Virus record (IMG/VR): IMGVR_UViG_3300021964_009390
Coordinates: 158,462 to 222,461 of that record
Direction: 5' to 3' (one strand)
Length of the DNA stretch: 64,000 bases
The notes under the pieces are model-generated. The model did no database searches and was not told where the DNA came from. It was given only the letters and a program-made list of their open reading frames with translations. Below are positions 1-64,000 of the stretch, in pieces (the first letter of the stretch is position 1; the number at the start of each line of letters is the position of its first letter). The position numbers and the translations under genes are program-made.

Positions 1-187
1 CTATCAAATCACCCTCGGTGAGTAACTGTTGGGTTTTAGATAAACGGTTTAGACGTGACGAATTCTTACCCCCAACAAAAGCACCACTATTAGGTACTCT
101 TTCAAAATTTAATTTAAAATAATCGGAAAGATACTTAGCAACTTCACGTTCACCTCGATTACCTTTTCCTTTACTTTTACTGGGCAT
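1..187 (-). CDS. Holliday-junction resolvase, Hjc-like PD-(D/E)XK family (partial; runs off the window start; not in the ORF track)
   Basis: Hand translation from ATG 187 (minus): MPSKSKGKGNRGEREVAKYLSDYFKLNFERVPNSGAFVGGKN...TEGDLI. This fits the KG..gERE / RVP.SGA / GD pattern of phage Hjc-like resolvases. TGTAAATA late motif 6 nt upstream. Confidence 0.7.
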   Translation of the reverse strand, partial: MPSKSKGKGNRGEREVAKYLSDYFKLNFERVPNSGAFVGGKNSSRLNRLSKTQQLLTEGDLI

Positions 188-195
188 TCATTTAT

Positions 196-420
196 TTACA
201 GTACATTTTTAAGATTTCTACGCAATATGGTCAATTGCTCCCTTTTAACCTTACGTTTACTACGTTTTTTACGCTTAGTTACAGGTTTAAAACCAATAAA
301 AGTAGGTATTCTCGCATCACCATCAGCATAACCACCACCAACATCACCAAATACACCCCCTGCACCGGCTACATTATCTTCATTGATAGTTTTAACGAAA
401 TAACTTTTAAATAGATTCAT
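196..420 (-). CDS. Small late protein, possible internal head protein
   Basis: 74 aa. N-terminus MNLFKSYFVKTINE, then a Gly-rich segment and a basic tail (KRKKRSKRKVKR). CATAAATA on minus at 452-459. Confidence 0.55.
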   Translation of the reverse strand: MNLFKSYFVKTINEDNVAGAGGVFGDVGGGYADGDARIPTFIGFKPVTKRKKRSKRKVKREQLTILRRNLKNVL

Positions 421-448
421 GGATTATGTGTGTAAAGTATACTATAAT
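420..448 (+). promoter_or_regulatory. Sigma70-like promoter of uvsY
   Basis: TGGATT(420-425)-N17-TATAAT(443-448); ATG 9 nt downstream. Confidence 0.55.
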
Positions 449-456
449 AAGTATTT

Positions 457-852
457 ATGGATGTAATAGAGCAATATATACTAGAACTTGAAAAAGATGT
501 TAAGTTGGACCAGTTCAACATACGGGATTGCCAAATGAAACTACCGGCATACAAGCATAAATGGGTAGGTCGTCTGATGAGACACAAGCACGAAGTAGTA
601 AAACTAAACCAAAAGAAACAATCTCTTAAAAAAACAGTCGTGAACAAGATACAAAGCGCTAGTACATACAAGGTATCAAAACCAGCTGCAGAAAAAGCGG
701 CTAGTACACATGATAGTATAGTGGATATAACCAATAAGATAGATGAACTCAACGTAATCATTGAATTTTTAGAAAAATCCGAGCGGATACTGAGCAGCAT
801 GACGTTTGATATAAAAAACCTTGTAGAAATCATGAAACTAGAAACAACATGA
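457..852 (+). CDS. uvsY: Recombination mediator UvsY
   Basis: 131-aa helical protein ending FDIKNLVEIMKLE (UvsY-type C-terminus); overlaps the uvsW start (ATGA). Confidence 0.75.
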   Translation: MDVIEQYILELEKDVKLDQFNIRDCQMKLPAYKHKWVGRLMRHKHEVVKLNQKKQSLKKTVVNKIQSASTYKVSKPAAEKAASTHDSIVDITNKIDELNVIIEFLEKSERILSSMTFDIKNLVEIMKLETT

Positions 853-2309
853 ACAAGTTGGTACAGCTGAGTTGGGATAATACTAAAAATGTTGCTATTA
901 TCAAGTGTGATCCAGATCTATTTGGTCACATCAGAGAACAATTCAGTATACCGAACAAGCAATACAGATTTCAGCGTCGTTTCTCCCGATACACCCCTAA
1001 GAGGTTGTATGCTATCACACCAACTGGTCGCTTTTTACCTGGAATATTTTATGAAATAAAGAAATTTATAAATGATACATACAACAACATATCATTTGGT
1101 TATAGTAATGTGTTTTTAAACAACATAAAACCCCGATATTTTATAGATGATCTAGCCAGTTTACGATTAGATTTAAGAGACTATCAACAAAATATAGTAA
1201 AAAAATGCCTGCAAATAGGTAGAGGTGTAGTAGTACTAGCCACTGCCGGTGGTAAAACCCTCACAACAGCATGCTTGGTAGAGTCTATATATAAAAAATG
1301 TGAAAAAACTAACGATTTTAAATGTTTAGTGATAGTACCCACTCTAAATCTAGTACATCAAACACATTCAGATTTTGAAGACTACAATGTATCATTCACA
1401 ACATGTAAATGGACCGGTGATGAACCGTTAGACCCGACATCCAATGTGATTGTAGCCAATGTAGGTATCTTACAAAGCTCAAAAACAGATATTGACTGGA
1501 TAAAATACATAGATCTATTAGTCGTTGATGAAGTACACATGCTAAGAAAAGGTAATAAAATAAACAAACTTGTGTCAAGTATCATAACCCCTAACAAATA
1601 CGGTCTGACTGGTACTTTACCAGAATGTAAGTTAGATCAATGGAATATATACGGCTTGATAGGACCTAAATTATACGAGAAATCGAGCAAAGATTTGAGA
1701 GATCAAGAATTTATAGGTAATGTACAGGCACAAGTACTCAAATTATCTTACAACCAATCACCGGAGCATTGCACCAACCCTAATGATAGATACAGAAAAG
1801 AAGTAGAATTTTTAACAAAAAATACATACAGAAATAAACTAATTGCACGACTATGTAAGAATTTTAAAAACAATTGTTTAATAATGGTAGATTATATAGA
1901 ACATGGTCAGTTAATCCATGACAACATAATAGAACAAAACCCAGACAAACAAGTATATTATATAAAAGGAGATGTAGAGATTGAAGAGCGAGAGAAGATA
2001 AGACAGTTGATGGAACAACATGATGATATAGCTATTGTAGCAATATCAAAAATATTCTCCACTGGAATCAATATTAAAAATTTACACTATATTGTTTTTG
2101 CTGGTGGTGGTAAAGCTAAAATAAAAATAATACAAAGTATAGGAAGAGGTTTAAGATTGCATAATGGTAAGAAAGATCTTATAATAGTAGATATTATGGA
2201 CCAACTAACATATGGGATCAAACATGGGCAAAAAAGACTCACTTTATATGACGATGAAAAAATCAAATACAACATCAAAACCGTTGAAGAAACGAAAACG
2301 AGCGAGTAG
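849..2309 (+). CDS. uvsW: SF2 DNA helicase UvsW
   Basis: LRDYQ Q-motif, Walker A ATAGGKT, DEVH, GLTGT, STGINI, QSIGRGLR. Confidence 0.95.
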   Translation: MNKLVQLSWDNTKNVAIIKCDPDLFGHIREQFSIPNKQYRFQRRFSRYTPKRLYAITPTGRFLPGIFYEIKKFINDTYNNISFGYSNVFLNNIKPRYFIDDLASLRLDLRDYQQNIVKKCLQIGRGVVVLATAGGKTLTTACLVESIYKKCEKTNDFKCLVIVPTLNLVHQTHSDFEDYNVSFTTCKWTGDEPLDPTSNVIVANVGILQSSKTDIDWIKYIDLLVVDEVHMLRKGNKINKLVSSIITPNKYGLTGTLPECKLDQWNIYGLIGPKLYEKSSKDLRDQEFIGNVQAQVLKLSYNQSPEHCTNPNDRYRKEVEFLTKNTYRNKLIARLCKNFKNNCLIMVDYIEHGQLIHDNIIEQNPDKQVYYIKGDVEIEEREKIRQLMEQHDDIAIVAISKIFSTGINIKNLHYIVFAGGGKAKIKIIQSIGRGLRLHNGKKDLIIVDIMDQLTYGIKHGQKRLTLYDDEKIKYNIKTVEETKTSE

Positions 2310-2727
2310 AAAAGACACAAACACTTACGTAAACCAGAAAGAGTTTATGGAAGCCCTCCGTGTGTATTACGATACTGATGAAATTAGCACCGAACTCGCT
2401 ACATACGTTAAGAAAATTGCTGAAGGGCTATCATATGCACCAAATTTTATAAATTATACTTATAAAGACGAGATGGTTGGTGACGCTATACTCAAAATGA
2501 TGCAGGCACTAGAGTATAAAAAATTTGACTTAGAGAACAGAGACAATCCTTTTGGTTATTTTACAACAATCGCGTTTCATGCTTTTATTAATCGAATTAA
2601 AAAAGAAAAAAAGCAACGCGAAACAATTAATGATTACCAGGAACAAGTGTATCAAGAGTTGATGAATGACGGTTCATCAGCGACAGGTGCGCATGTATAC
2701 ATAGCTGATAGTACAGACGACGAATAA
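2254..2727 (+). CDS. gp55: Late-transcription sigma factor gp55
   Basis: YVNQKEF...KIAEGLSYAPNFINYTYKDEMVGDA...NPFGYFTTIAFHAFINRIKKEKKQ is the gp55 signature. Start uncertain (track 2212; ATGs at 2248/2254). Confidence 0.92.
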   Translation: MKKSNTTSKPLKKRKRASRKDTNTYVNQKEFMEALRVYYDTDEISTELATYVKKIAEGLSYAPNFINYTYKDEMVGDAILKMMQALEYKKFDLENRDNPFGYFTTIAFHAFINRIKKEKKQRETINDYQEQVYQELMNDGSSATGAHVYIADSTDDE

Positions 2728-2743
2728 TCTTGATTGTATATTG

Positions 2744-3805
2744 ATGAATTTAAACAACTTTCAGTTTAAACATCATGAAGTATGTTGTATATCTGATATC
2801 CATATTGGAGTGCATCAGAATAGTCAGATGTGGTTGGATATATGTGATGAATGGGGAGATTGGTTACTAGATGAACTGAAATCTAAAAATATAAAAGATA
2901 TAATCATATGTGGTGATTTATTTCACTATAGAGATGAGATTGCTGTAAACACCATACACCACGTGACGGACTTTTTACATAAGTTTAATGAATTTAATAT
3001 AATAATGTTGGTGGGTAACCATGATGCATACTACAAGGATCGTTCAGATGTTAACAGTATGAGTATATTGTCCGGGTGGAACAATATATGTGTGGTTGAT
3101 AAGGATATATATGTACATGAGCATGGTTCTAACCGTCTGGCTTTTGCCCCATGGGGCGTTACCGCGGATCAAATTCCGAACTGTGATATATTGTTCGGTC
3201 ATTTTGAAATTGAGAACTTTAACTTGTCTCAACACTTTGTATGTAAGCATGGTATAAAATCGAAAAGTCTTCTGGATAAAACAGATCTAGTGATAACCGG
3301 ACATTTTCATACCAGAGAACAACGAGAGTATAGGAATGGGCAAATTGTATATCTAGGTAATCCGTATCAAATGGATTTTGGTGATTCTGGACAGACTAAA
3401 GGTTACTATATACTAGATATTAATAATAAAAAGTACAATTTCTGTGAAAATAAAATATCCCCTACACATGAAAAAATAACATTAAGCGGTCTAGTAGAGC
3501 ATGGAGATATTGACAATCATATTATAAATAAAATATCAAACAACATAGTACGTTTTGTTGTAGATAAGAACATATCACCTGATGAGATAGAACAGCTGTT
3601 AAGAATTTTAAGTTCATACAAGCCATTGATTCTCACTACAGATTACAACATAAATTTTGATAGATTTGGTTTATCTGACGAAGATACCGATTTAAGCGGA
3701 GTTAGCATAGAATCTGCAATAGATGAATTTGTAAATTTATTAGATATAAACAATAAAGAAAAAATAATACAATATACAACAAATTTATACAATCGTTGTA
3801 AATGA
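2744..3805 (+). CDS. gp47: Recombination nuclease subunit gp47 (Mre11/SbcD-like)
   Basis: Metallophosphoesterase motifs SDIHIG, GDLFH, GNHD, GHFE, GHFH; adjacent to gp46. Confidence 0.93.
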   Translation: MNLNNFQFKHHEVCCISDIHIGVHQNSQMWLDICDEWGDWLLDELKSKNIKDIIICGDLFHYRDEIAVNTIHHVTDFLHKFNEFNIIMLVGNHDAYYKDRSDVNSMSILSGWNNICVVDKDIYVHEHGSNRLAFAPWGVTADQIPNCDILFGHFEIENFNLSQHFVCKHGIKSKSLLDKTDLVITGHFHTREQREYRNGQIVYLGNPYQMDFGDSGQTKGYYILDINNKKYNFCENKISPTHEKITLSGLVEHGDIDNHIINKISNNIVRFVVDKNISPDEIEQLLRILSSYKPLILTTDYNINFDRFGLSDEDTDLSGVSIESAIDEFVNLLDINNKEKIIQYTTNLYNRCK

Positions 3806-3822
3806 ACTAGATAATATTTGAT

Positions 3823-5661
3823 ATGAAACATATACAGTTTAGAAAATTATCAATCAAAAATTTTTTATCGGTCGGAGATACACCAGTAGAAATAGACTTC
3901 CGGCCAGGTCTGCATATCATAACAGGTATAAATAAAGACAAGGTTGACCGCCGCAATGGTGTGGGTAAAAGTACTATCGCCGATGCTTTATATTTTGCAC
4001 TGTATGGTAGTACATTGAGGGAGTTAAAAAAAGAGTTTATATGTAATAATATATCCCCTGGTAGATGTGAAGTATCGTTGTCAATAGAGATACAAGACAA
4101 GCAAAAAAGTACAGAATATAGAATAACTAGACTATTAAATCCAACCAAGTGTTATATCTACAAGGATGGCGAAGACTGTACTCGAGACACAATATTACAT
4201 ACAACAGACTTTATCAACAACCTCATAAACACTTCTGAGGATGTGTTTCAAAACTGTATATTAATGACAGTAAACAACACAATACCTTTCATGGCAAAGA
4301 AACGCATAGATAAGCGAAAATTTATAGAAGGTATATTAAATTTAGAAGTTTTTAGCGGTATGATAACCATGTTGAGAAATGAATATAACGAAAAGCGCCG
4401 TGAATTAGAAACTGAATGTACCGTGTTTGATGAAGTTCAAAACTCTCTTAAAAATTATAATGAACAAAAAAACTTACATGACAATAGCAAGTATGAAAAA
4501 CTTAAAAAGTATAAGACAAGACAACAGGACAACATAGCAGAGTTACGAGATATAGAAAGTAAAATTAAAAATACAAAACTGCTAGACTCGACAGAATATA
4601 TAACTAAATCAGACATTCTAGAAAAAAGGCTAGCGGCATGCAAGAGTAAGACATCTAAAATAAACACTGAAATTATAGAGAAAAAAACAAACATCAATAT
4701 ATCATTAAAACAGCTAGAAACTCTGTCTGGTGTGAAATCAGAACCAATATGTCCTACATGCTTGAGAAAAATAGATCATGACGACATAACACATATTGAA
4801 CAAGAAAAAATAAATATAAAACAAAACATAAAAACATATAAACAAGCGGTAGATGATAGTACATGTGAGTATAATGATTTAATAAACGTAAAAACTGAAC
4901 TTGAAGACCGGATAGACAAAAATAACGATTCCATATCACAAGCTAAACTAGTCGAACAACAACTAGAGAGTTACAACACTCGTAAAGAACAACTGAACAA
5001 CTGGCAGACTGAGTTGAAACAAGACATACAAGAATTGAACAACCAATCCAATCAATTCGATACTTTAATAAAAGATACCGAGTCTAGAATAACTTCAATT
5101 AAAGATAACATTAATAATATAAAAGAAAATATAAAAGATTTAGATGTTGTGAAGTTTGTTGTATCGGAGGAAGGGGTAAAATCATACATTGTAAAAAAGA
5201 TATTGCAGTTGTTGAACAATAAACTATCATATTACTTGAAAAAAATGGATAGTAATTGTGTTTTATTTTTCAATGAGTATTTTGAAGAACAAATCGTAGA
5301 TGACAAAGGCAAAATATGTAGCTACTTCAATTTTAGTGGAGCTGAACGAAAAAATATAGATCTCGCATGCTTATTCACATTTATGGATATACGGAGACTG
5401 CAAGGAGATGTAGCATTCAACGTGAGTGTATATGACGAACTGTTTGATAGTAGCTTGGACGAGAAGGGTGTTGACCTTGTCATACAAATATTAAAAGAGA
5501 GACTAGAAAAATATAATGAATGTATGTATGTAATATCTCATCGAAAGGAAAGTGTTAATTTCACCACACAAGCCGAAATAAGAGATGGTGATATAATTTT
5601 CCTCAAAAAAGAGAACGGTATAACCACGAGGGTACCATTCACAAGAGACAAGTCTAACTAA
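3823..5661 (+). CDS. gp46: Recombination ATPase gp46 (Rad50/SbcC-like)
   Basis: Walker A NGVGKST, long coiled coil with CPTC zinc hook, FSGAE signature, DELFDSSLD Walker B/D-loop, SH motif. Confidence 0.95.
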   Translation: MKHIQFRKLSIKNFLSVGDTPVEIDFRPGLHIITGINKDKVDRRNGVGKSTIADALYFALYGSTLRELKKEFICNNISPGRCEVSLSIEIQDKQKSTEYRITRLLNPTKCYIYKDGEDCTRDTILHTTDFINNLINTSEDVFQNCILMTVNNTIPFMAKKRIDKRKFIEGILNLEVFSGMITMLRNEYNEKRRELETECTVFDEVQNSLKNYNEQKNLHDNSKYEKLKKYKTRQQDNIAELRDIESKIKNTKLLDSTEYITKSDILEKRLAACKSKTSKINTEIIEKKTNINISLKQLETLSGVKSEPICPTCLRKIDHDDITHIEQEKINIKQNIKTYKQAVDDSTCEYNDLINVKTELEDRIDKNNDSISQAKLVEQQLESYNTRKEQLNNWQTELKQDIQELNNQSNQFDTLIKDTESRITSIKDNINNIKENIKDLDVVKFVVSEEGVKSYIVKKILQLLNNKLSYYLKKMDSNCVLFFNEYFEEQIVDDKGKICSYFNFSGAERKNIDLACLFTFMDIRRLQGDVAFNVSVYDELFDSSLDEKGVDLVIQILKERLEKYNECMYVISHRKESVNFTTQAEIRDGDIIFLKKENGITTRVPFTRDKSN

Positions 5662-5662
5662 A

Positions 5663-6808
5663 ATGTTTGTAAATCCATTAAACCCTACCGGAAACACTTC
5701 ATTTCAGTTCAACAAACCGGCACCTACCACACCACCAACTTCAAAATTACCGGAAAATACACTGCCTAGATTTTTAAATTTCGTTGCTGATTACACCGGA
5801 TGTGGCCATTGGAGAATGTTGTGGCCGGAACAAATACTGAACAGTTACAGAATGTGTGTGATGCAAAGCTCTACCATGATGGTGACAGATCCCAAGCATT
5901 TTTCTGGTGTGAGAACTGTTAGAGTACAGAGACAAGCGAGCCCTACACAGGAAAAATACTTAAATTATTTGAAAAATAATCTCGGTATCCGATTGGTATA
6001 TGATATTGATGATGTATGTTTTGGAGAGGATATTCCACATTATAATCCGTTCCGGACTGCTTTTACAGACCCGGTCATAATTGACGGTATCAAACGTATG
6101 ATGGAACTTTGCGATGAGATGACAGTTACAACTCCAGCTCTTAAAAAATATTATCAAGACAATACAAATCAAAAAAACATAACAGTTATACCAAATTACC
6201 CACCAAGATTCTGGATAGGTAACATGTATAATACCAAGCAAAGAAGTAAAATTTATGACAAGCATGCGAAAAAACCTAGGATACTTTACGCCGGGAGTAG
6301 TTCACATTTTGATATAAAAAATAATAATCAACACATCGATGATTTGTCACATGTGAATAGTTATATAATAAAAACACTCAACAAATATCAATGGGTGTTT
6401 GTAGGAGGGATCCCATACCAATTGAAATCATACGTGAACAGTGGTAAGATTGAGTATCATAAATGGAACCATTTGTATGATTACCCATATGAAATATCTA
6501 AATTAGAAATAACTGCATCGATTGTACCTCTACAAGACAACCAATTCAATCGCGGTAAAAGTGATATAAAATTTTTAGAATGTGCAGCTTTGGGTATCCC
6601 GACTGTGTGTCAAGACATAGGAGTTTACAATAAATGTAAACATTTATTCAAGACAGTAGACTGTTTAGATGAACAGCTCAACACATTACTATCTACAAAG
6701 AAACATTACATGTCAACATGTGATAGAAATCACGCGCATGTGTGTAGTATGTGGTTAGAAAACGAAAACAATAGAAACAAATATTTAAAAATATATCAGG
6801 TTGATTAA
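5663..6808 (+). CDS. GT-B fold glycosyltransferase (GT4-like)
   Basis: GCGHWRM, YDIDD, TVTTPAL, VIPN, ILYAGS.SH, PLQDNQFNRGKSDIKFLECAALGIP donor-binding C-terminal motif. Confidence 0.8.
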   Translation: MFVNPLNPTGNTSFQFNKPAPTTPPTSKLPENTLPRFLNFVADYTGCGHWRMLWPEQILNSYRMCVMQSSTMMVTDPKHFSGVRTVRVQRQASPTQEKYLNYLKNNLGIRLVYDIDDVCFGEDIPHYNPFRTAFTDPVIIDGIKRMMELCDEMTVTTPALKKYYQDNTNQKNITVIPNYPPRFWIGNMYNTKQRSKIYDKHAKKPRILYAGSSSHFDIKNNNQHIDDLSHVNSYIIKTLNKYQWVFVGGIPYQLKSYVNSGKIEYHKWNHLYDYPYEISKLEITASIVPLQDNQFNRGKSDIKFLECAALGIPTVCQDIGVYNKCKHLFKTVDCLDEQLNTLLSTKKHYMSTCDRNHAHVCSMWLENENNRNKYLKIYQVD

Positions 6809-6820
6809 CAGATGTGGTAA

Positions 6821-6828
6821 TATAAATA
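6821..6828 (+). promoter_or_regulatory. T4-type late promoter
   Basis: Perfect TATAAATA, ATG 6 nt downstream. Confidence 0.7.
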
Positions 6829-6833
6829 GTAAC

Positions 6834-7052
6834 ATGCCAACAACTAAAAAAGCAAAAACTACAAAAACTTCAGCCCCAGACTACAAAATCGTACTTGAAG
6901 AAGTGTTAGATCTGAGCTCAGCTCTAGTTAGAGAGATTGACAACATTATGGAGTCACAATTACCACCGGCTCAAGTTGGTAAAGTTTTAGGTGATGTGGT
7001 TTCCGGATTTCAACAGAGACTAGAAGAATATAAAGTATCCGCGAAACTATAA
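6834..7052 (+). CDS. Small hypothetical late protein
   Basis: Track ORF 6801-7052; ATG 6834 lies 6 nt after a perfect TATAAATA (6821-6828). Confidence 0.6.
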   Translation: MPTTKKAKTTKTSAPDYKIVLEEVLDLSSALVREIDNIMESQLPPAQVGKVLGDVVSGFQQRLEEYKVSAKL

Positions 7053-7059
7053 ATTTATA

Positions 7060-7088
7060 TTGATATATTCACATATATACTCTATAAT
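7060..7088 (+). promoter_or_regulatory. Sigma70 promoter of gp43
   Basis: TTGATA-N17-TATAAT; GTG 7 nt downstream. Confidence 0.8.
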
Positions 7089-7094
7089 TAGAGT

Positions 7095-9701
7095 GTGTAT
7101 AGGAATATAATTTACGACGCTAAAAACGAAACGTGTAAACTCTTCACGTGGGACAACTCTGGAAACCGGGTGTGTTATGACACGAGTTTCAACCCGTATG
7201 TGTACTATGAAACTAATGGTAAATCTAACGGTAAGAGCATATTCAATACCGCGGTAAAAAAACGATCATTCCGGACACAATACGATCGATACAAATTTGT
7301 AAAAGACTGCGGTGTAAAAAGGGTATTTGAAAATATACCTAGTGAACAACAATTTTTAATAGATCAGTACTGGGAAAAAAACGAATCTCCGGAATTCACA
7401 GAAAATCCTTTGAAGGTATTATTTATAGACATTGAAACATACAGCCCAGATTCATTTCCAGATGTAGATAACCCCTCTCACCCAATCAATGTAGTAACCA
7501 TATACGATACATTACAAAATAAATTTTATTCTTGGGGTACCAAACAATACGATACTACAGATATTGAAACACCCGGTGGTAGCATTGTTAAAAAAGACAT
7601 ATTATACTATCATTGCAAAACAGAAGTTGAGATGCTACGTCGCTTCTTGGATTATATAAAAAATGATTACCCGGATATCATAACTGGTTGGAATAGTGAA
7701 TTATTTGACATACCATACATAATTTCACGAATGGGTCGTATCTTGGATGAGAATGAATATAAACAACTGAGCCCTGTAGGTGAAGTGTTCTGCCGTGAGA
7801 TCGCCGGTCAGTTTGGCAAGAGCCGTTTCCGGTGGTATATAAAAGGTGTTTCTAGTTTAGATTACCTAGATATATACAAGAAATTCAGCATGGGTCTCCG
7901 GGAGAATTACAAACTCGACACCATTGCACAGTTCGAACTAGGTGATAAAAAAATAGACTATGGCGGTATGAATCTAGCTCAATTAGCAGATGAAAATTGG
8001 AAAACATTCGTAGACTACAACATACAAGACGTAAACCTACTTGTCCGGATGGAAGAGAAGTTGCAGTACCTTAAACTGCTGAGAATGTTGGCGTATGTGG
8101 GACTATCACCACTAGAAAGCGCCATGGGGACATTAACTGTAATCACAGGTGCATCCGTCATACAAGCACGTAAAGACGGCTATGTAATACCAACATTTAT
8201 AAAAGAAAACACAAAAGATGGTAAATACGAAGGAGCGTATGTAGGAGAACCAGAGCGTGGTTTTCAACAAGACATTGTAAGTTTTGATGCTAACAGTCTA
8301 TATCCTAGTACCATGATAACACTGAATTTGTCACCGGAAACTAAAATAGGTTCTGTTGTAGAGAAAACCCCGGATCATATAACAGTGAAGCATGTGAACG
8401 GTAAGTTATTCAATTTATCACACGATAAATTCTTAAAATTCATCAAAAAAGAAAAAATAGCTATAACAAAAGCTAAAGCACTGTTTAGCCAAAAAACAAA
8501 AGGCATCATACCTAAAATTGTAGACAAGCTGTATGCGCAACGTGTTGAGTTCAAAAAGGAATTGGATAGAACACGCCGTGAGTTATCAAAACTTGATCCC
8601 GAAACATCAGAATATCAAAACAAAAAAAATGAATCTGAAACTTGGTGGGTAAAACAATATACAGTAAAAATATTGATCAACAGTATATACGGTTACTTCG
8701 GTAACAAATATGCACCTATGGGAGACAGTGACATCGCGCGAAGCATAACATTAACTGGCCAAGCTGTTATCAAGCAATCAAATAAAATACTGTATGATTA
8801 TATAAAACAAATGACAGGTAATGACAACTTACGTGTTGAAGATGTAGTCAAATATAATGATACGGACTCAAGCTACATTAGTATAAAATGTATAAATGAC
8901 AGCAAATCTCTTGAGCTGTGTGAATCCGGTAAAGTTGCTGATCATACATATAAAATAGTACAAGACATTGAGGATCATTTGAACGTGGAGATTACTAAAT
9001 GGGCTCAACGTAATTTAAATAGTCACGATCCCCGGTTCGTTTTCAAACGAGAGTGTATAGCAGATGTAGGTATGTTTCTAGAAAAAAAGAGATATGTTCT
9101 ACATGTGTTAGATGATGAAGGTATACCTGTTGATAAGTTCAAGTACACCGGTGTAGAGGTAGTGAGAACCACCATACCCGAACCTGTGAAGCCGTATATT
9201 AAGAAAATAATCGAAACAATGCTCACCACTCGAAACCTAGGTGAAACCAACAAGCTGTTGCATGAAACATACGATATATTCAAGAGTTTGGAAGTAGAAG
9301 ACATCGCTTTCGCGATGGGTTGTAAGGAATATGATAAATATGCCAGTAGATGTGATGAGTTTAACACGTGCAAAGGTATGCCGATCCATGTGAAAGCTAG
9401 TTATATACACAACAAAATCTTAGAAAAATTAAATATTGAGAACAAATATGAATCTATCGGTAATGGTGACAAGGTGAGATACTTGTATGTACAACAACCG
9501 AACAGATACGGGGTGAATGCCATAGGTTACAAGTACTATTATCCGGATGAATTCAAAGAAATATTCAAAGTGGATCGAGAATTAATGTTTGACAAGATTG
9601 TATATAGTATCATCGAAAGATTTTACGATTGTGTGAAATGGAAAGCAAAAAAACCTGGCATGGCAGTACAGACTGATTTATTTGAACTGTTCTCTACATG
9701 A
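7095..9701 (+). CDS. gp43: Family B DNA polymerase gp43
   Basis: ExoI FIDIETY, ExoII GWNSELFDIPY, ExoIII YNIQDV, SFDANSLYPS, KILINSIYG, NDTDS, KKRY. GTG start. Confidence 0.97.
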   Translation: MYRNIIYDAKNETCKLFTWDNSGNRVCYDTSFNPYVYYETNGKSNGKSIFNTAVKKRSFRTQYDRYKFVKDCGVKRVFENIPSEQQFLIDQYWEKNESPEFTENPLKVLFIDIETYSPDSFPDVDNPSHPINVVTIYDTLQNKFYSWGTKQYDTTDIETPGGSIVKKDILYYHCKTEVEMLRRFLDYIKNDYPDIITGWNSELFDIPYIISRMGRILDENEYKQLSPVGEVFCREIAGQFGKSRFRWYIKGVSSLDYLDIYKKFSMGLRENYKLDTIAQFELGDKKIDYGGMNLAQLADENWKTFVDYNIQDVNLLVRMEEKLQYLKLLRMLAYVGLSPLESAMGTLTVITGASVIQARKDGYVIPTFIKENTKDGKYEGAYVGEPERGFQQDIVSFDANSLYPSTMITLNLSPETKIGSVVEKTPDHITVKHVNGKLFNLSHDKFLKFIKKEKIAITKAKALFSQKTKGIIPKIVDKLYAQRVEFKKELDRTRRELSKLDPETSEYQNKKNESETWWVKQYTVKILINSIYGYFGNKYAPMGDSDIARSITLTGQAVIKQSNKILYDYIKQMTGNDNLRVEDVVKYNDTDSSYISIKCINDSKSLELCESGKVADHTYKIVQDIEDHLNVEITKWAQRNLNSHDPRFVFKRECIADVGMFLEKKRYVLHVLDDEGIPVDKFKYTGVEVVRTTIPEPVKPYIKKIIETMLTTRNLGETNKLLHETYDIFKSLEVEDIAFAMGCKEYDKYASRCDEFNTCKGMPIHVKASYIHNKILEKLNIENKYESIGNGDKVRYLYVQQPNRYGVNAIGYKYYYPDEFKEIFKVDRELMFDKIVYSIIERFYDCVKWKAKKPGMAVQTDLFELFST

Positions 9702-9728
9702 ACAAATTGTAAAAATATTGAATATATG

Positions 9729-9757
9729 TGGATTTTTGTCATATAATATTATATCAT
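9729..9757 (+). promoter_or_regulatory. Sigma70-like promoter of the 9764 ORF/uvsX
   Basis: TGGATT-N17-TATCAT with ATG 7 nt downstream; an alternative TTGAAT-N18-TATAAT lies at 9718-9747. Confidence 0.55.
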
Positions 9758-9763
9758 ATATAC

Positions 9764-10195
9764 ATGAGCTTAAATTTAAGAGTAATCGTTGACGCCGCCG
9801 GCAGAACCATCATTGGAGAACATGATAATGAAACAGATCAGTCTATTTCATTGAAAAATCCCGCGACTTTGTTTATACAACCTAATCAACAAACTGGACA
9901 ACTAGCAGTACAGTTGATACCTTTCTTTTTTAGAGAGTTTGTTGAAGAAGAGAAACGACCAGAAGGAGTCAGCTGGACATTCGACAAATCCTCGCTCGCA
10001 ACTTCAGAGCAGTTCGGTTTAGACAACAGATTGTTGGACCAATACGAAAAAATGATGACCAAAGAAGCCAATACAAACCCACCACCTATTGAAGATACTG
10101 AAGCTTTCGGCCCAGCTGCCGGAAAAGCAAAAGAAGTGAAATTGTTTGATGAAACTGCCGAAAAAGCAGAAACAGTTGAGCCAGTAGATGGGTAA
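9764..10195 (+). CDS. Hypothetical protein, possibly Sm-like/SH3 fold
   Basis: Pattern TIIGE...ISLKNPATLFIQP...GQLAVQLIPF...WTFDKS...LLDQYEKM resembles small Sm-like beta-barrel proteins of T4-like phages; acidic tail. ATG 9764 preferred over track 9728 because of promoter spacing. Confidence 0.5.
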   Translation: MSLNLRVIVDAAGRTIIGEHDNETDQSISLKNPATLFIQPNQQTGQLAVQLIPFFFREFVEEEKRPEGVSWTFDKSSLATSEQFGLDNRLLDQYEKMMTKEANTNPPPIEDTEAFGPAAGKAKEVKLFDETAEKAETVEPVDG

Positions 10196-56339: not shown

Positions 56340-56342
56340 ACT

Positions 56343-57119
56343 GTGAAAAATATAACAGTAGTTATACCAATATACAAATTGGACACTCACCGGTATAAAA
56401 ATTTAATGTTCATACTGAATAAACTGTACAGGAAACATAAAATTGTGATTGTGGAACAGATCACCGACTTTTCACACCTTTCATTGCCAGAGATATACAA
56501 TATTAAAAATATAAACCATGTGAAACTTTACAGCGAATGCAAAAACATTAAAAAATGTTGGTTGATAAACATGTCATGCAATTTTGTCAAAACCTCGTTC
56601 ATATGGATAATCGATTGCGATTTTTACATGAACTTTGACACTGTAAAACTCAGTGACGATATGTTAAACAAATATAATTTTATACAACCGTTTGTATACG
56701 CTAGGAATTTGAGTGAATTAGAAACAAAAACGCTACATGACACTGGTCATATTGAAATAAAATATTATGACGGGTTGGAATCCGAGCATCGCCATGTAAA
56801 TGTATACGGTGCGTTAAGTTTTATATTCAATATTAATAAATTCAAACAAATAGGTGGTATGGACGAACAGTATCAGGGATGGGGGTACGAAGATTACGAT
56901 ATATTTCTGAGAATACATGAACAACTCCCTAATGAAAACATATATATCAACAAACAACAGACTGGTATGCATCAGTGGCACCCGGTCATGGAAAACATAG
57001 AAAATCAAGCCAGTAACAACTTAGAAATTTTCCAACAAAAAGACTTCAATTTAACTAAAGTAAATAAAATACTGAAAGCAAAATATTACCAAGATTGGGA
57101 TTTTGGTGATGTGGATTGA
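56343..57119 (+). CDS. GT-A glycosyltransferase (GT2/GT7 galactosyltransferase-like)
   Basis: VVIP, IVIVEQ, IIDCD (DxD), F.QIGGMDEQYQGWGYEDYD, HQWHP. GTG start. Confidence 0.85.
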   Translation: MKNITVVIPIYKLDTHRYKNLMFILNKLYRKHKIVIVEQITDFSHLSLPEIYNIKNINHVKLYSECKNIKKCWLINMSCNFVKTSFIWIIDCDFYMNFDTVKLSDDMLNKYNFIQPFVYARNLSELETKTLHDTGHIEIKYYDGLESEHRHVNVYGALSFIFNINKFKQIGGMDEQYQGWGYEDYDIFLRIHEQLPNENIYINKQQTGMHQWHPVMENIENQASNNLEIFQQKDFNLTKVNKILKAKYYQDWDFGDVD

Positions 57120-57134
57120 AACTCTACATAGTTT

Positions 57135-57142
57135 ATTAAATA
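57135..57142 (+). promoter_or_regulatory. Late promoter of the 57150 gene
   Basis: ATTAAATA, ATG 8 nt downstream. Confidence 0.6.
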
Positions 57143-57149
57143 TAAATGT

Positions 57150-60100
57150 ATGCCTAACCAACGAACATACTACTCTAGTAACAAAGATATAGACGAGGTA
57201 TCTACTATAAACCCCCTGTCGTATGTGGAGTGGTTAAAATATGAAAATAGTTTTGACAAAAACACAGCTTTTGAACTGTATACTGTATATTTAAACAATT
57301 GGTACACTACTAATACCAAGGTTACAGCAGAACAGCAACAACAATATGTAAGAAACCAATATATTCAATTGTTAAAGCAGATCACACTAGAATATACAAC
57401 TGCTGATGAAAAAAGATTTTTGTCAAACTTAGATTATACAGACAACAAAGATTTAGACGTAGCGTTACCGTTCTTCAGCAAAAAAATCAAACAAATAGCA
57501 ATATACTACGCTAGTCAACGTGAAGAGATAAAGTATTCAAAAATTAAAAACAATCTGAAGGGTAGTGATTTTGGTATGAGTCAAATAATATACAAGCAAT
57601 TTGCTGACACTATCGCTAATGACACACAAATTGTGGAACAACTACAAGACTTAAACTTGACTTTGAACGATGTTTTGTTAAATCTGGAAATATCTGTAGA
57701 AGAGCTGTACGATACAGAGCAAAATTATTATAATATTTCGCCCGGAAGCGACAAAAAAGAATACACAACATTCAACAACTCACCACGTTACAATTATTTT
57801 GACATGTCCATACTACCTACAAGTTCGCGGATGTTCATACAAGAGTTGTACACCCAGGCAGTTATTGATTTGATAAAAGAAGTCCCAGTGATGCTATTAT
57901 CAACCAAAGGTGATGATGCTAATTACGAAAATGAAACACTAGTGTACGCTACCGGTGAGGCAATAGCCATATCCGAAACTGTGACCGGTACCGAACTAGA
58001 TCGGTTGGATGCTAGTGCGTTTATCAACTACACAGACACTGGAGCTTTAAATATAAGTTACGAACAATTAGCATTTCAAAAATATTCCGGGACTGACTAT
58101 TTTTATCTCAGCACTGGTGACAGTTTGACAGACACTATAACCGGTCAATTGTTCACGGCCACTGCTGCGCATAAGAACATTCTCAACAGACATCACCCAA
58201 CAATAGCCAGTGTCACTGGGGAGAATTTGTATAAATTAGAATATTTAGGGGGATTTTTCTTAGGTACCGGTATAGGTCTCGCCAGCTTTGCATCATTTGA
58301 TTTTGAATACAAGTTCAAGCCAGAATTAAACACGGTAATGTATTTTCCAGATCCCCAGGTAGGATCAACCGGTTATTTTGGCGCGTATGAAAAGTTCAAA
58401 GCCCCGGTGCAATACTATGAAAACGTAAATTGGAACAAACAATCTGTAGTAACCACATACAATTATGGCTTGCAATCACAGTTGGATAACATGCCTAGGT
58501 TCACTGCTTACCAGTCATCAGAGCACATACTCAACGAACCTACCGGAGTGTTCCGGTACAATGATGTATATGATTTTTGGACACCTACAGGGCAAAATGT
58601 GTGGCTCAACGAAGATATATATGATAAGCAGCAACAGCAATCGGACATAGACGATAGACAATTACAACTTCACACTGGTCAAAAAATAGTATACAAATGG
58701 AAGACGGATATTTACGGTAACAACTATGCACTAGTGAAAAACAATATCTCTCCAGAAAAAACACCACCGGTTAATACAGCCAGTAATATAACTGAGAGTG
58801 AATATGTTACAAGCACATCTACTAACAAAAGCGCCAACATATCTAAATATGAATGGCATAATAAAACCGAAGGGACCACTCATGGACGAAAAAATTTGTC
58901 AGAACAAAAAGAATCTCCCGGGGAATTGTACATCAGAAACAACACGTTTACTGGTATACATTTAGTAACCGATACAATATTTTCAGATGTGTATCAAAAA
59001 TACGTTATATCCGGGACTGTAGAATATAAAGAACGGACAATAACAATTAGCGATATTGGTGCCGAGATTGTAAGCAATTTAATAGACATTGACATAATAC
59101 AGGACATAATTATATTAGAAACTGATTCATACATAATTTTTGAAAAATTGTCATATGATTACGACACTGGTCGGATATATAGTGACAATAAAAATTATAC
59201 GTTCATTGTAAAAAGGTATTACGGTAACAGTTACAACATGACAGGTAATTGGTGGTTTGATGAAGACAAGCAACGGATCTTAGTATGTCAGACCAATGTA
59301 CACCCGACGTATCAAAACACAAACGACAAAATGATATACATTATTTTATATAATTTTGATATTAATACTTTGAAATTGAGGCAAGCGTACCCGGACCCAG
59401 ACTACACTGCCGCTCAATTGGTATACGAAACAAGTCAGTATTCATTGAGTGCTATACCTAGTGAACACAACATCGTGAAAGTAAAGCCACCCATGTTGAC
59501 ATTCAATAAAGATTCTGAACGTTACAGTGTATCACAATTGCAATTTGATTCCACCCGGAACCCATATTATCTCAAAACAGATTTCCGAATGTACATGGAA
59601 ACAATCGAGCTGATAAGAACTAACTTTTTTAAACACAATTACTTCAGTTACTCGTTAAACAGTTACAACGAGTCTGTTGAGGATTATTTTTACGAGACAA
59701 ACACAAGTATAACTACACCAACATGGTACCATGGAACCTCTGATGATGTAGTGTATATGGGTGCAACTGAAGCCGCAGGAGCACCAGTAGCTATTCCAGG
59801 CTACAGCAACAGCGTGTGGACATACGGTATAGACTCGGACAGCTACGAGTCTGAACGTGATATAATATTATCATTCGATTATTGTATGTTTGGCAATGCC
59901 GCGCCGTTTGGGTTAAGTGTATTGTTTTACAATTCAAGAAACAGTACAAACACTGGGTATGAAACAGTCGCATCAGGCGGTCTTGGCCCGGCTTTCAATT
60001 ATTTGAACGATACAACTACCGGTTCCGGAACTCAAGCTAGTTCGACCGGTTTGCAACACGGTCATGCTTGTGTGGCATTGGATGCAACCGGTAATTACGG

Positions 60101-60587
60101 TAATTCGTCGCTCACCAGCGGAGAGACACCAATTGCTGATAGTGTAGTAGTGTCCGGTCCATATGAATCTGCTATGACACAACGTGATGTGACTGTGTTA
60201 CCAACAAAATTTAAATTGTATGACTCATCAATAGATCAAGACAGTTTAAAATTCACCAGATGCCGGGTGACTCTAACGGACCTGGGTCGACGCGTGTTTG
60301 TAGACATGATGAACCCGGAATCAGACTCCCGCTACACCAGAATAAGTGACACCCAAATAAGTGATTACTACCCGACCGGTCCAGCTGGTACCACAACCAC
60401 AACCACAACCACAACCACAACCAGTAGCGGTGGTGGTACAATCGTACCGTATTACACCATACCAACCAAATTGAATGTATCATTAGCTTTCAACAATAGC
60501 AACCCAATCGGTGGGATATGTGCCATCCGGGACATCACAATCACCGGTAGTAACGCTTCACGTGCCGGTCTCGCAGTAACTGTCTAA
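57150..60587 (+). CDS. Large virion structural protein with probable C-terminal lectin-like domain and poly-Thr tract
   Basis: 1145 aa; late motif upstream; C-terminal beta-sandwich (FGLSVLFY...GGLG...VALDATGNYG) resembles ConA/L-type lectins; 11 consecutive Thr. Confidence 0.55.
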   Translation: MPNQRTYYSSNKDIDEVSTINPLSYVEWLKYENSFDKNTAFELYTVYLNNWYTTNTKVTAEQQQQYVRNQYIQLLKQITLEYTTADEKRFLSNLDYTDNKDLDVALPFFSKKIKQIAIYYASQREEIKYSKIKNNLKGSDFGMSQIIYKQFADTIANDTQIVEQLQDLNLTLNDVLLNLEISVEELYDTEQNYYNISPGSDKKEYTTFNNSPRYNYFDMSILPTSSRMFIQELYTQAVIDLIKEVPVMLLSTKGDDANYENETLVYATGEAIAISETVTGTELDRLDASAFINYTDTGALNISYEQLAFQKYSGTDYFYLSTGDSLTDTITGQLFTATAAHKNILNRHHPTIASVTGENLYKLEYLGGFFLGTGIGLASFASFDFEYKFKPELNTVMYFPDPQVGSTGYFGAYEKFKAPVQYYENVNWNKQSVVTTYNYGLQSQLDNMPRFTAYQSSEHILNEPTGVFRYNDVYDFWTPTGQNVWLNEDIYDKQQQQSDIDDRQLQLHTGQKIVYKWKTDIYGNNYALVKNNISPEKTPPVNTASNITESEYVTSTSTNKSANISKYEWHNKTEGTTHGRKNLSEQKESPGELYIRNNTFTGIHLVTDTIFSDVYQKYVISGTVEYKERTITISDIGAEIVSNLIDIDIIQDIIILETDSYIIFEKLSYDYDTGRIYSDNKNYTFIVKRYYGNSYNMTGNWWFDEDKQRILVCQTNVHPTYQNTNDKMIYIILYNFDINTLKLRQAYPDPDYTAAQLVYETSQYSLSAIPSEHNIVKVKPPMLTFNKDSERYSVSQLQFDSTRNPYYLKTDFRMYMETIELIRTNFFKHNYFSYSLNSYNESVEDYFYETNTSITTPTWYHGTSDDVVYMGATEAAGAPVAIPGYSNSVWTYGIDSDSYESERDIILSFDYCMFGNAAPFGLSVLFYNSRNSTNTGYETVASGGLGPAFNYLNDTTTGSGTQASSTGLQHGHACVALDATGNYGNSSLTSGETPIADSVVVSGPYESAMTQRDVTVLPTKFKLYDSSIDQDSLKFTRCRVTLTDLGRRVFVDMMNPESDSRYTRISDTQISDYYPTGPAGTTTTTTTTTTTSSGGGTIVPYYTIPTKLNVSLAFNNSNPIGGICAIRDITITGSNASRAGLAVTV
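60390..60422 (+). repeat. (ACCACA)n hexamer encoding poly-Thr
   Basis: 5.5 perfect copies, 11 Thr. Confidence 0.9.
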
Positions 60588-63174: not shown

Positions 63175-63205
63175 AAGCAAACTAATCATGTTAAAAGCAA
63201 ACTAA
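63166..63205 (+). repeat. 20-bp direct tandem repeat spanning the stop codon
   Basis: TCATGTTAAAAGCAAACTAA x2. Confidence 0.9.
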
Positions 63206-63229
63206 ACACGTTTAAAATGAAGAAATCGT

Positions 63230-63237
63230 AATAAATA
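63230..63237 (+). promoter_or_regulatory. Late promoter of the 63264 gene
   Basis: AATAAATA upstream of the Thr/Ser-rich ORF. Confidence 0.5.
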
Positions 63238-63263
63238 ATTGTTATAGATTCTATACCACCACT

Positions 63264-64000
63264 ATGAGCTGTACAAATTGTCAAGTTACGATAACATCTG
63301 TGACCGGAACCCCGGAAAAATACGACCTTCGCAAAGTTAATGCAGATGGAAGTACCGGTGACCCGTTTACCATTGTAGGATCCGGGTTGAACGCAGTGGA
63401 TTTTGAATTGACCGAGCTACCATGGACCATTTACGTAGGGGATTCAGGGGATGCTCATTGGGTTCGCGACTTGGGTGGTGTGAATACAGACAGTGGGTCG
63501 TGGGGACCTGGTGATGGTCTGACAGTCACTGTACGTGTACAGAACCATGATGATGCAAATTGCTACTACGATGTGGAATACACATGTGTATCAGTCACCA
63601 CTACAACAACCACGACCAGTACTACAACCAGCACCACAACTTCAACTTCGACCAGTACTTCAACTTCGACCAGTACTACAACTAGCACCACGACCAGTAC
63701 TACAACCAGCACCACGACGTCGACTACGACCAGTACTTCAACTTCGACCAGTACCACAACTTCAACTTCGACCAGTACCACAACTTCAACTTCGACAACA
63801 ACCAGTACCACAACTTCAACTTCGACCAGTACCACAACTTCAACTTCGACAACAACCAGTACTACAACTAGCACCACGACCAGTACCACAACTTCAACTT
63901 CGACAACAACTTCGACAACAACTTCGACAACAACTTCGACAACAACTTCGACAACAACTTCGACAACAACTTCGACAACAACTTCGACAACAACTTCGAC
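63264..64000 (+). CDS. Mucin-like Thr/Ser-rich late protein (partial; runs off the window end; not in the ORF track)
   Basis: Hand translation MSCTNCQVTITSVTGTPEKYDLRK...VEYTCVSV followed by >130 Thr/Ser codons with no stop; AATAAATA at 63230-63237. Confidence 0.75.
   Translation, partial: MSCTNCQVTITSVTGTPEKYDLRKVNADGSTGDPFTIVGSGLNAVDFELTELPWTIYVGDSGDAHWVRDLGGVNTDSGSWGPGDGLTVTVRVQNHDDANCYYDVEYTCVSVTTTTTTTSTTTSTTTSTSTSTSTSTSTTTSTTTSTTTSTTTSTTTSTSTSTSTTTSTSTSTTTSTSTTTSTTTSTSTSTTTSTSTTTSTTTSTTTSTTTSTSTTTSTTTSTTTSTTTSTTTSTTTSTTTSTTTS
63595..64000 (+). repeat. Thr/Ser-coding repeats ending in a perfect 12-bp array
   Basis: Mixed ACN/TCN/AGY codons; (ACTTCGACAACA) x8 plus a partial copy from 63897 to the window end (TSTT units). 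Confidence 0.9.

Follow-up and report, generated by a model that had tools for sequence, protein, structure and literature searches.

CCGG is the most over-represented tetranucleotide in the genome of an uncultured marine T4-like phage, where it occurs at about three times the frequency predicted by base composition, and the enrichment is a heritable trait of the phage's clade. Phages usually avoid such sites, but here codon choice is bent in every reading frame to make the motif, and neither the enzyme families we searched for nor the sampled genomes of the likely host lineage, Verrucomicrobia, explain it. We analysed a 64,000-nucleotide stretch (the window; positions 158,462 to 222,461 of IMG/VR record IMGVR_UViG_3300021964_009390) and the whole 222,461-bp genome. 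The window has 330 copies of CCGG, against 85 expected from a mononucleotide model, 77 from a first-order Markov model and 189 from a maximal-order Markov model (z = 14.8, the highest of all 256 tetramers). The whole genome has 1016 copies against 330 (mononucleotide) and 559 (Markov; z = 26.5). Features referred to below are listed in Table 1.

Table 1 Coordinates within the window of the features examined.
Position	Strand	Feature	Observations
1..64000	.	Whole window	About 1 CCGG per 194 bp, spread over all genes and intergenic DNA; 3-20 sites per 2-kb bin
7095..9701	+	gp43 DNA polymerase	15 CCGG and 1 GGCC (mononucleotide expectation 2.8); about 31% identity to cyanophage polymerases; 7 CCGG differences from a strain about 3% diverged within 7337-8600, against 1.9 expected
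48875..60418	+	Baseplate and tail-fibre region, used for strain comparison	75 CCGG against 61 in a contig 96.2% identical; 22 sites only in the window and 8 only in the variant; most differences are CCGG versus CTGG or CCAG
43066..47119	+	Second strain-comparison region	20 CCGG against 17 in contigs 96.5% identical
5663..6805	+	Predicted GT-B fold glycosyltransferase between gp46 and gp43 (context, not shown to be part of the cause)	PHROG glycosyltransferase; AlphaFold2 mean pLDDT 76.5; Foldseek GT4 hits at about E=1e-8; present in all relatives
12678..14762	+	QueC (12678-13385), class-II glutamine amidotransferase (13390-14058) and predicted GT-A fold glycosyltransferase (14061-14762) (context)	PF06508 E=2e-59 (QueC); GATase_6; also present in the CCGG-neutral outgroups
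1..24427	+	T4-type recombination and replication module (context)	UvsY, a UvsW-like helicase, gp47, gp46, gp43, UvsX, gp41, gp32, gp45, an RNase H-like exonuclease and gp61 primase

The observation made in the initial annotation, that CCGG is over-represented independently of frame, is confirmed, and each of its hand counts is exact: those for gp43, 8 CCGG in 5641-6660 and 12 in 57901-59040. Its six example positions also lie in the frames it gave (NCC-GGN at 7804, CCG-GAN at 7389, and a CGG codon after C at 7271, 7829, 7898 and 8045). To test whether codon usage or base composition could account for the excess, as the two conditions set beforehand for refuting it would require, we compared coding CCGG with shuffled sequences and with other G+C-only tetramers. 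Coding CCGG is 972 against 544 under within-gene synonymous codon shuffling (z about 25) and 972 against 732 under a third-position shuffle that keeps dinucleotides (z about 19), even though the latter fixes the CCG-G frame by construction, and CCGG is the top word under both nulls. Across the genome the other palindromic GC-only tetramers lie at 0.72-1.15 of the mononucleotide expectation (GGCC 0.72), and in the window the full set of other GC-only tetramers lies at 0.45-1.62. Neither refuting condition is fulfilled, and codon usage and amino-acid composition were rejected as the cause by the two shuffles and by the codon-context counts given below.

To determine whether the bias acts on the DNA word, we examined its frames and flanks. 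The three frames hold 388, 394 and 190 sites, and non-coding DNA, defined here as that left outside a crude set of ORF calls, holds 44 against 16-19.5 expected. The effect is specific to the tetramer: a third-position C before GG is enriched 2.2-3.1-fold only when the second codon base is C, and is depleted or neutral (0.54-1.1) in the GTN, CTN, GGN and CGN families. NNY codons end in C 59-94% of the time before CGG, against 31-49% elsewhere. Enrichment of 5-mers is strand-symmetric (ACCGG 1.74 against CCGGT 1.80; TCCGG 1.71 against CCGGA 1.80), and all 16 flanking pairs are enriched 1.3-2.8-fold. A hidden longer repeat or motif was rejected, as all flanks are enriched and no 8-mer context exceeds 10 of the 330 sites in the window. 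Selection at the level of translation (codon pairs) or mRNA, for example for a target of an RNA-binding protein or nuclease, is very unlikely: the three frames involve unrelated tRNA pairs yet show the same bias, the excess persists in non-coding DNA, flank enrichment is symmetric between a 5-mer and its reverse complement on the coding strand, and gp23, the most highly expressed gene, uses CCGG least (7 against 14.6 expected). However, nearly all of a T4-type genome is transcribed and a palindrome reads the same on both strands, so an RNA-level role cannot be formally excluded from sequence alone.

To survey for the trait among relatives, we compared loci grouped by polymerase identity. CCGG is the top tetramer in each of the six relative loci profiled in full (polymerase 58-82% identical). 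The ratio of CCGG to the Markov expectation is 1.6-2.1 in all twelve distinct relative loci with polymerase at least 58% identical, and 0.85-1.55 (no more than 1.33 in loci over 6 kb) in sister groups at 45-54%.

Phage tetranucleotide usage often tracks that of the host, and the phage might simply have drifted towards a CCGG-rich host genome. The closest cellular homologues of the phage's DUF1501 and DUF1549/1553 genes are in an order of Verrucomicrobia. In 120 kb of a Verrucomicrobia single-cell genome (G007) we saw no CCGG excess (z -0.35), and 30 loci from 30 genomes of its order had a median observed/expected of 0.87 (maximum 1.48), with CTAG strongly depleted, the opposite of the phage; the host is inferred from these two gene families only, and a CCGG-rich host cannot be excluded. 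Sister phage clades with the same gene order also lack the trait, and we consider host mimicry improbable. A metagenome-assembled genome (MAG), G006, was considered as host and dropped: its matching 4.7-kb contig carries two phage-like genes, and the MAG's family lacks homologues. The G006 contig closest to the phage's DUF1549 gene is probably phage-derived and is not CCGG-rich. The phage tmRNA gave no host link, as no tmRNA was recovered in G006 or G007.

We next asked how sites are distributed and how fast they turn over. Per-gene use of possible sites fits a binomial across 177 genes (SD of z 1.07), with no correlation with G+C. Spacing is random given the possible sites; a deficit of pairs closer than 20 bp (76 against 103) is probably an artefact of mutually exclusive overlapping sites, and no selection on spacing was seen. 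Positional sharing between relatives is 0.41-0.45 against 0.29, no more than the residual similarity at synonymous sites. The trait is labile, with strains 96% identical differing at 37 CCGG sites in 15.6 kb, and with an asymmetry of 20:6 in the C_GG context against 200:192 elsewhere (p = 0.014). An attempt to polarise these differences with a lineage 77% identical gave outgroup states of C 5, T 4 and A 5, synonymous sites being too saturated.

Density maintained without positional conservation, uniform use and random spacing are what a drive predicts. In such a scenario, biased mismatch repair or gene conversion of the very-short-patch type, CCGG cytosines would be methylated by a host or an unrecognised phage enzyme (methylation being hypothetical here, as the available data are assembled contigs of short-read runs), and mismatches arising in near-CCGG sequences during the heavy recombination-dependent replication of a T4-type phage would be resolved preferentially towards CCGG, so that the word accumulates without benefit to the phage. 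There is a precedent: Dcm/Vsr raises CCWGG and lowers CTAG in E. coli, and the HpaII methylase system carries a vsr homologue. Consistent with this, 26 of the 37 strain-level differences are C/T changes at the inner cytosine, giving CTGG or CCAG, and synonymous transition-capable positions inside CCGG differ twice as often as other C/G positions (19/84 against 177/1569, p = 0.005). However, outer positions vary as much as inner ones (4/20 against 19/84), and the dominance of inner changes is what the codon structure allows anyway. The expected victims of such repair are not depleted against the synonymous null (CTGG 1.12, CCAG 0.97), the transversion neighbours being depleted instead (CAGG 0.68, CCGT 0.73, CCGA 0.69), and CTAG is enriched (1.72). 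No Vsr (PF03852) or cytosine methyltransferase was found in the phage, and sampled genomes of the candidate host lineage, which would be exposed to the same host enzymes, show no excess. We regard this explanation as possible but doubtful.

The initial annotation had inferred that CCGG may be the target of a phage or host modification, repair or recombination system; this interpretation is only partly supported. Its claims that the motif acts at the DNA level and that no methyltransferase lies in the window hold, but that CCGG is the target of such a system is not shown. Profile searches of the whole genome for C5, N4 and N6 methyltransferases (PF00145, PF01555 and PF02086), for Vsr, for a thymidylate-synthase-like hydroxymethylase and for DpdA/TGT (PF01702) were all empty, whereas control genomes matched; a novel methyltransferase fold cannot be excluded. 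The annotation missed that the window holds DNA-modification-type genes within the replication module, namely QueC, a glutamine amidotransferase, two predicted glycosyltransferases and an RmlD-like enzyme. The genome also encodes FolE (PF01227, E=3e-46), QueD (PF01242) and QueE (PHROG E=5e-42; TIGR03963), which with QueC are the genes for preQ0 (7-deazaguanine) synthesis. This pathway was rejected as the correlate of the trait by its distribution: FolE, QueC and the amidotransferase also occur in CCGG-neutral relatives (five loci), and FolE was not found in two CCGG-rich genome fragments of 98 and 88 kb, although these records are only 41-46% complete. The glycosyltransferase genes, too, are shared with CCGG-neutral relatives, and the modification-type genes therefore do not explain the trait.

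To search for a hidden DpdA or methyltransferase, we examined four orphan ORFs in the Que cluster (352, 190, 551 and 137 aa). None had a match in Pfam, PHROGs, NCBIfam or PADLOC or by sequence in the PDB; ESM Atlas models of the 352- and 551-aa ORFs are poor (pLDDT 0.36-0.38), and these two have no relatives in IMG/VR. The conserved 381-aa and 234-aa unknowns beside the polymerase and QueC were rejected as DpdA because their predicted folds are those of GT-B and GT-A glycosyltransferases, not a TIM-barrel TGT. A divergent DpdA3/4-like protein remains possible. Phage DpdA, the signature protein of 7-deazaguanine DNA modification (PMC10516641), writes at short motifs (GA and GGC in CAjan, PMC7544227; GA in iggy, PMC10484667), and the DpdA3 and DpdA4 subfamilies first escaped detection (PMC10516641). 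In the passages and abstracts of these papers that we consulted, no enrichment of a DpdA target motif is mentioned.

Our preferred reading, to which we give a probability of only about 0.35, is that CCGG is kept at its density by a weak, genome-wide pressure acting on the double-stranded DNA word itself and belonging to this phage lineage, not to its host. About 35% of the places where a synonymous codon choice can spell CCGG do so in the CCG-G and NCC-GG frames, roughly twice the use expected from codon frequencies alone; the odds are the same in early, replication and structural genes and in intergenic DNA, and individual sites come and go quickly while the density is held. The most likely cause would be that CCGG is the recognition sequence of a phage-directed DNA transaction in which the number of sites matters and their positions do not. 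Candidates are a sequence-specific writer of the DNA hypermodification that the genome is equipped to make (preQ0/7-deazaguanine pathway, amidotransferase, glycosyltransferases) or a site-specific binding or nicking protein. What the analysis establishes is the excess, its DNA-level nature, clade distribution, uniformity and turnover, and its absence from sampled genomes of the candidate host lineage; that the pressure is selection for site density, and that the agent is phage-encoded, we infer, no CCGG-recognising protein having been identified. Nothing in the sequence separates selection for density from a biased repair or conversion drive. A simple model in which only CCGG is favoured also does not predict that CTGG and CCAG are kept while CAGG and CCTG fall to 0.68 and 0.75, and a single CCGG reader does not explain why CTAG and, more weakly, most 4-bp palindromes are enriched too.

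More speculatively, and unlikely on present evidence, this clade, probably infecting Verrucomicrobia or other PVC bacteria, may have evolved a viral iterated palindrome. CCGG would be the target of an unrecognised phage-encoded, sequence-specific DNA writer or reader, perhaps a new transglycosylase or glycosyltransferase tied to the 7-deazaguanine and sugar genes in the replication module, and site density would be under positive selection because it sets how densely the genome is protected or processed. That would be the first case of a virus enriching, not avoiding, a restriction-type palindrome for its own use. Full-text literature searches found no description of CCGG or CTAG enrichment in phages. 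The signal, the strongest tetranucleotide signal in a genome in which no methyltransferase was found, points to an undescribed sequence-specific DNA transaction or repair bias in an almost unstudied group of marine phages, gives a simple compositional marker for binning this clade, and further suggests that hypermodification genes sit within the replication module of T4-like phages far from the cultured ones.

Among the closest known systems are HIP1 (GCGATCGC) and other highly iterated palindromes of cyanobacteria, likewise short palindromes far above expectation, spread through coding DNA in all frames by synonymous choices, heritable at clade level and of debated function. HIP1, however, is an octamer in cellular genomes, is quasi-periodic and is recognised by methylases encoded in the same genome (DmtA and DmtC; PMC13756078), whereas here the word is a randomly spaced tetramer in a lytic-type phage in which no methyltransferase was found. 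The comparison made in the initial annotation with HIP1 and its methyltransferases thus remains an analogy.

Finally, we considered whether CCGG is the extreme case of a general palindrome-forming mutation process, such as template switching of the Ripley quasi-palindrome type known from T4. Of the 16 four-base palindromes, 14 have positive z in the genome (mean +6.6 against -0.4 for other words), the mean z of palindromes is positive in all clade members and negative in all outgroups, and CCGG, CTAG and CATG are the top three words under the synonymous shuffle. However, 6-bp palindromes are barely enriched (mean z 0.24), the equally self-complementary GGCC, GCGC and GATC are little or not enriched, and no mechanism is known that acts on 4-bp words without a loop, making this process unlikely. 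Restriction-site avoidance in phages (for example PMC6286503) likewise concerns 4-6-bp palindromes and acts through synonymous sites, but with the opposite sign: this clade accumulates a classical type II site (HpaII/MspI) and shows no net palindrome avoidance, whereas the outgroup phages show avoidance of GATC and TGCA.

The virus record is a single contig of 222,461 bp, rated 100% complete, with 39% G+C, and the window is its last 64 kb. It represents a distant T4-like myovirus whose gp43 polymerase is only about 31% identical to those of the nearest cultured phages, which are cyanomyoviruses, although gp23 is recognisable. The window carries a T4-type recombination and replication module comprising UvsY, a UvsW-like helicase, gp47, gp46, gp43, UvsX, gp41, gp32, gp45, an RNase H-like exonuclease and gp61. 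The DNA occurs in estuary and marine metagenomes.

To test whether CCGG is truly over-represented, we recounted the motif and compared it with composition and Markov models. In the window, CCGG occurs 330 times, against expectations of 85 from base composition, 77 from a first-order Markov model and 189 from the maximal-order Markov model (z = 14.8, the highest of all 256 tetramers). In the whole genome there are 1016 copies against 330 and 559 (z = 26.5). Across the genome GGCC, which has the same composition, is at 0.72 of expectation, and CGCG and GCGC are at 1.15 and 0.98; in the window the full set of other G+C-only tetramers lies between 0.45 and 1.62. With a crude set of 279 ORF calls, coding CCGG numbers 972, whereas within-gene shuffling of synonymous codons gave 544 (z about 25). 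A third-position shuffle that also preserves dinucleotides gave 732 (z about 19), although it fixes one of the three frames by construction. CCGG is the top word under both nulls. The initial annotation had proposed that CCGG is over-represented in a frame-independent way; this observation held, and every number it gave was exact. It had named two outcomes that would overturn the claim, namely a count no higher than codon-shuffled and dinucleotide-corrected nulls, or similar enrichment of all G+C-only tetramers, and neither was found.

The three frames hold 388 (CCG-G), 394 (NCC-GGN) and 190 (NNC-CGG) sites, and DNA outside the ORF calls holds 44 against 16–19.5 expected. All 16 NCCGGN hexamers are enriched (1.3–2.8-fold), each 5-mer is enriched about as much as its reverse complement, and no longer motif lies behind the signal. 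The bias is specific to the four-letter word: a third-position C before GG rises 2.2–3.1-fold only when the preceding base is C, and falls or stays flat in the GTN, CTN, GGN and CGN codon families. Two-fold NNY codons end in C 59–94% of the time before CGG, against 31–49% otherwise and 26–49% before other CGN codons. The claim of the initial annotation that the effect is at the DNA level therefore stands, and we consider an effect at the level of RNA or translation very unlikely.

About 36%, 34% and 8% of the positions where a synonymous choice could spell CCGG do so in frames 0, 1 and 2, respectively. Across 177 genes the deviation from these rates has an s.d. of 1.07 z-units, which is binomial, and there is no correlation with gene G+C. 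The lowest user is the gp23 major capsid gene (7 sites against 14.6 expected), which has 49% G+C; this low use fits competition with translational codon selection. Given the possible sites, the spacing of used sites is random. Between relatives whose synonymous sites are nearly saturated (39% identity at four-fold sites), a CCGG in one genome predicts a CCGG at the same place in the other only weakly (0.41–0.45 against 0.29). The density is held, but the sites are not.

To determine how the trait is distributed, we examined the 22 loci in IMG/VR that encode related polymerases. All twelve distinct loci with polymerase at least 58% identical show the excess (observed over Markov expectation 1.6–2.1; the locus labels L012 and L021 denote the same sequence). 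In each of the six such loci profiled in full, CCGG is the top tetramer, and CTAG is the second word in five of them (L003, L005, L006, L012 and L022). The groups at 45–54% identity show neither, and instead show ordinary avoidance of GATC and TGCA. A lineage 77% identical at the nucleotide level, and several strains at 96–97%, are also CCGG-rich. In the whole genome CTAG is likewise the second most over-represented tetramer, with 877 copies against 542 (Markov) and 844 against 491 (synonymous shuffle), and it is second only in the CCGG-rich clade. The mean z of the sixteen 4-bp palindromes is positive in the clade (14 of 16 have positive z in the genome) and negative in every outgroup; outgroup phages and sampled candidate-host genomes show the usual depletion. 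A general palindrome-forming mutation process, with CCGG as its extreme case, is possible, but we regard that explanation as unlikely. At the other extreme, TAAG and CTTA are at 0.31 of their compositional expectation, the strongest depletion in the genome, and CAGG and CCTG are avoided in a tetramer-specific way, A before GG being avoided after C but preferred after T.

To assess strain-level dynamics, we first compared part of gp43 with a strain about 3% diverged, which differs from the window at 40 positions. It lacks 4 of the window's 9 CCGG and has 3 others, one pair being a 3-bp relocation made by three adjacent changes; random synonymous changes of the same kind give 1.9 such events (P about 0.001). 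Over 15.6 kb compared with Logan contigs 96.2–96.6% identical, the window strain has 95 CCGG and the variant 78, with 27 sites unique to the window and ten to the variant. Of these 37, 26 are C/T differences at an inner position (CTGG or CCAG). In an 11.5-kb part of this stretch, the 22 window-only and 8 variant-only sites compare with 14.4 and 3.5 expected under a class-matched null (total P = 0.004). The two strains are asymmetric: in the C_GG context the split is 20 (window C, variant T) to 6, whereas in all other contexts it is 200 to 192 (Fisher P = 0.014). Synonymous transition-capable positions inside CCGG differ about twice as often as other C/G positions, equally for inner (19/84) and outer (4/20) positions, against 177/1569 elsewhere. 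The dominance of inner-position changes is therefore what the codon structure allows, and is not evidence for one chemically special cytosine. The outgroup 77% identical is too saturated to polarise the changes. These data do not show whether gains or losses are accelerated, but they do show that the CCGG load is evolving now, and differently in sister strains.

We next searched for an agent in the phage. Whole-genome family searches found no C5 methyltransferase, N4/N6 methyltransferase, Dam-class methyltransferase, Vsr, thymidylate-synthase-like hydroxymethylase or TGT/DpdA, whereas the control genomes matched. The interpretation of the initial annotation, that CCGG may be the target of a phage or host modification, repair or recombination system, was thus only partly supported: the bias acts on DNA, but none of these enzymes was found. 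The genome does encode a full preQ0 (7-deazaguanine) pathway in two places, with FolE, QueD and QueE lying among four orphan ORFs and QueC followed by a class-II glutamine amidotransferase. Two conserved unknowns in the replication module were modelled with AlphaFold2 (mean pLDDT 76–78) and are predicted to be a GT-B and a GT-A glycosyltransferase, not transglycosylases. An RmlD-like enzyme, a cytidylyltransferase-like protein and a HAD phosphatase are also present. The phage therefore probably hypermodifies something, possibly its DNA, and the gene set suggests an undescribed hypermodification shared with the sister clades.

However, these genes do not track the CCGG trait. QueC, the amidotransferase, both predicted glycosyltransferases and FolE occur in the CCGG-neutral outgroups, and FolE was not found in 98-kb and 88-kb fragments of CCGG-rich relatives, although those records are only 41–46% complete. 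Every phage with 7-deazaguanine in its DNA is stated to have a DpdA, and the DpdA3 and DpdA4 families first escaped detection (PMC10516641). A hidden DpdA therefore remains possible, but nothing here points to one.

Coordinates of the compared regions and of features in the window and the rest of the genome
Feature	Window position	Genome position	Locus position	Strand
T4-type recombination and replication module	1-24,427			
PD-(D/E)XK endonuclease gene	1-187	158151-158648		minus
gp43 region compared with strain about 3% diverged	7337-8600			
Contig join skipping 396 bp inside gp43	8351-8748			
Insertions in unknown 463-aa gene	11429-11438			minus
QueC	12,678-13,385			
Split preQ0 pathway, glutamine amidotransferase, predicted GT-B and GT-A glycosyltransferases, RmlD-like enzyme, cytidylyltransferase-like protein and HAD phosphatase, in or near the replication module	5663-6805, 12678-14762 and 21021-21992	142-155 kb		
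FolE, QueD and QueE among four orphan ORFs		147-153 kb		
11.5-kb part of the strain comparison	48,875-60,418			
gp23 major capsid gene		4150-5706	L023	
tmRNA (outside the window)		32277-32660	L024:12277-12660	
DUF1549/DUF1553 protein		49004-51052	L025:9004-11049	
DUF1501 protein		58513-59781	L025:18513-19778	
tRNA-Met and tRNA-Thr		78.9 and 80.3 kb		

To test whether the signal could be a host signature, we used two phage proteins, one DUF1549/DUF1553 and one DUF1501, a pair of families typical of Planctomycetes and Verrucomicrobia. Their cellular homologues lie side by side in a Verrucomicrobia single-cell genome (G007) at 38% and 50% identity, respectively, and DUF1501 homologues reach 55% identity, with many paralogues, in that genome's order. 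Their presence in a T4-like phage hints at a PVC host, for which few phages are known. In 120 kb of G007, CCGG has a z of −0.35, and thirty loci from thirty genomes of the order have a median observed/expected of 0.87 (maximum 1.48), with CTAG strongly depleted. As far as the host can be guessed, the phage's signal runs opposite to it, and host mimicry appears unlikely. A further copy of the DUF1549 gene, 57% identical, lies on a 4.7-kb contig (C149, locus L033) binned into a bacterial MAG (G006). This contig carries two genes shared with the phage (57% and 64% identity) that the rest of the MAG's family lacks, and is probably a mis-binned phage fragment.

Together, the data fit a weak, uniform pressure on the DNA duplex that is intrinsic to the phage lineage and favours CCGG. 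The excess, its DNA-level nature, its restriction to one clade among the relatives sampled and its turnover between strains are direct results of the sequence comparisons, whereas selection, a phage-directed agent and any modification of the phage DNA are inferred. Two mechanisms of this kind cannot be separated from sequence alone. We tentatively favour selection for the number of sites (probability roughly 0.35), in which CCGG would be the target of a phage-directed writer, binder or nickase, as the pressure is clade-specific, unlike the candidate host, and coexists with a conspicuous set of putative hypermodification genes. A conversion or repair drive of the Vsr type is possible but more doubtful: there is no Vsr or methyltransferase among the families searched, and the expected victims, CTGG and CCAG, are not depleted, while the transversion neighbours are (CAGG 0.68, CCGT 0.73, CCGA 0.69). 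In addition, CTAG is enriched, where a Vsr-type process would deplete it. No single-site model explains the co-enrichment of CTAG, the milder excess of most 4-bp palindromes, the tetramer-specific avoidance of CAGG and CCTG, or the asymmetry between sister strains.

The nearest known phenomena are the cyanobacterial HIP1 palindrome with its methylases, the Dcm/Vsr bias for CCWGG in E. coli, and motif-specific DpdA modification, each of which shares one aspect with the present case and fails at least one defining test. Compositional enrichment of a short palindrome is already known, but full-text literature searches found no report of a phage clade enriched in CCGG or CTAG. The enrichment is real, strong and so far unexplained.

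Beyond the motif, the phage encodes a full-length one-piece tmRNA (Rfam RF00023, 90 bits), for which ARAGORN gives an unusually long tag ending in ALLAA, as well as tRNA-Met and tRNA-Thr. A 166-aa phage PD-(D/E)XK endonuclease (PF24608, E = 1e-23) lies just upstream of uvsY, and no homologue was seen in the relatives' loci that cover this region. Contigs of two runs skip part of gp43, but only 23 letters lie on the shorter side, so the join is doubtful. A variant strain has 9-bp and 3-bp insertions in the unknown 463-aa gene.
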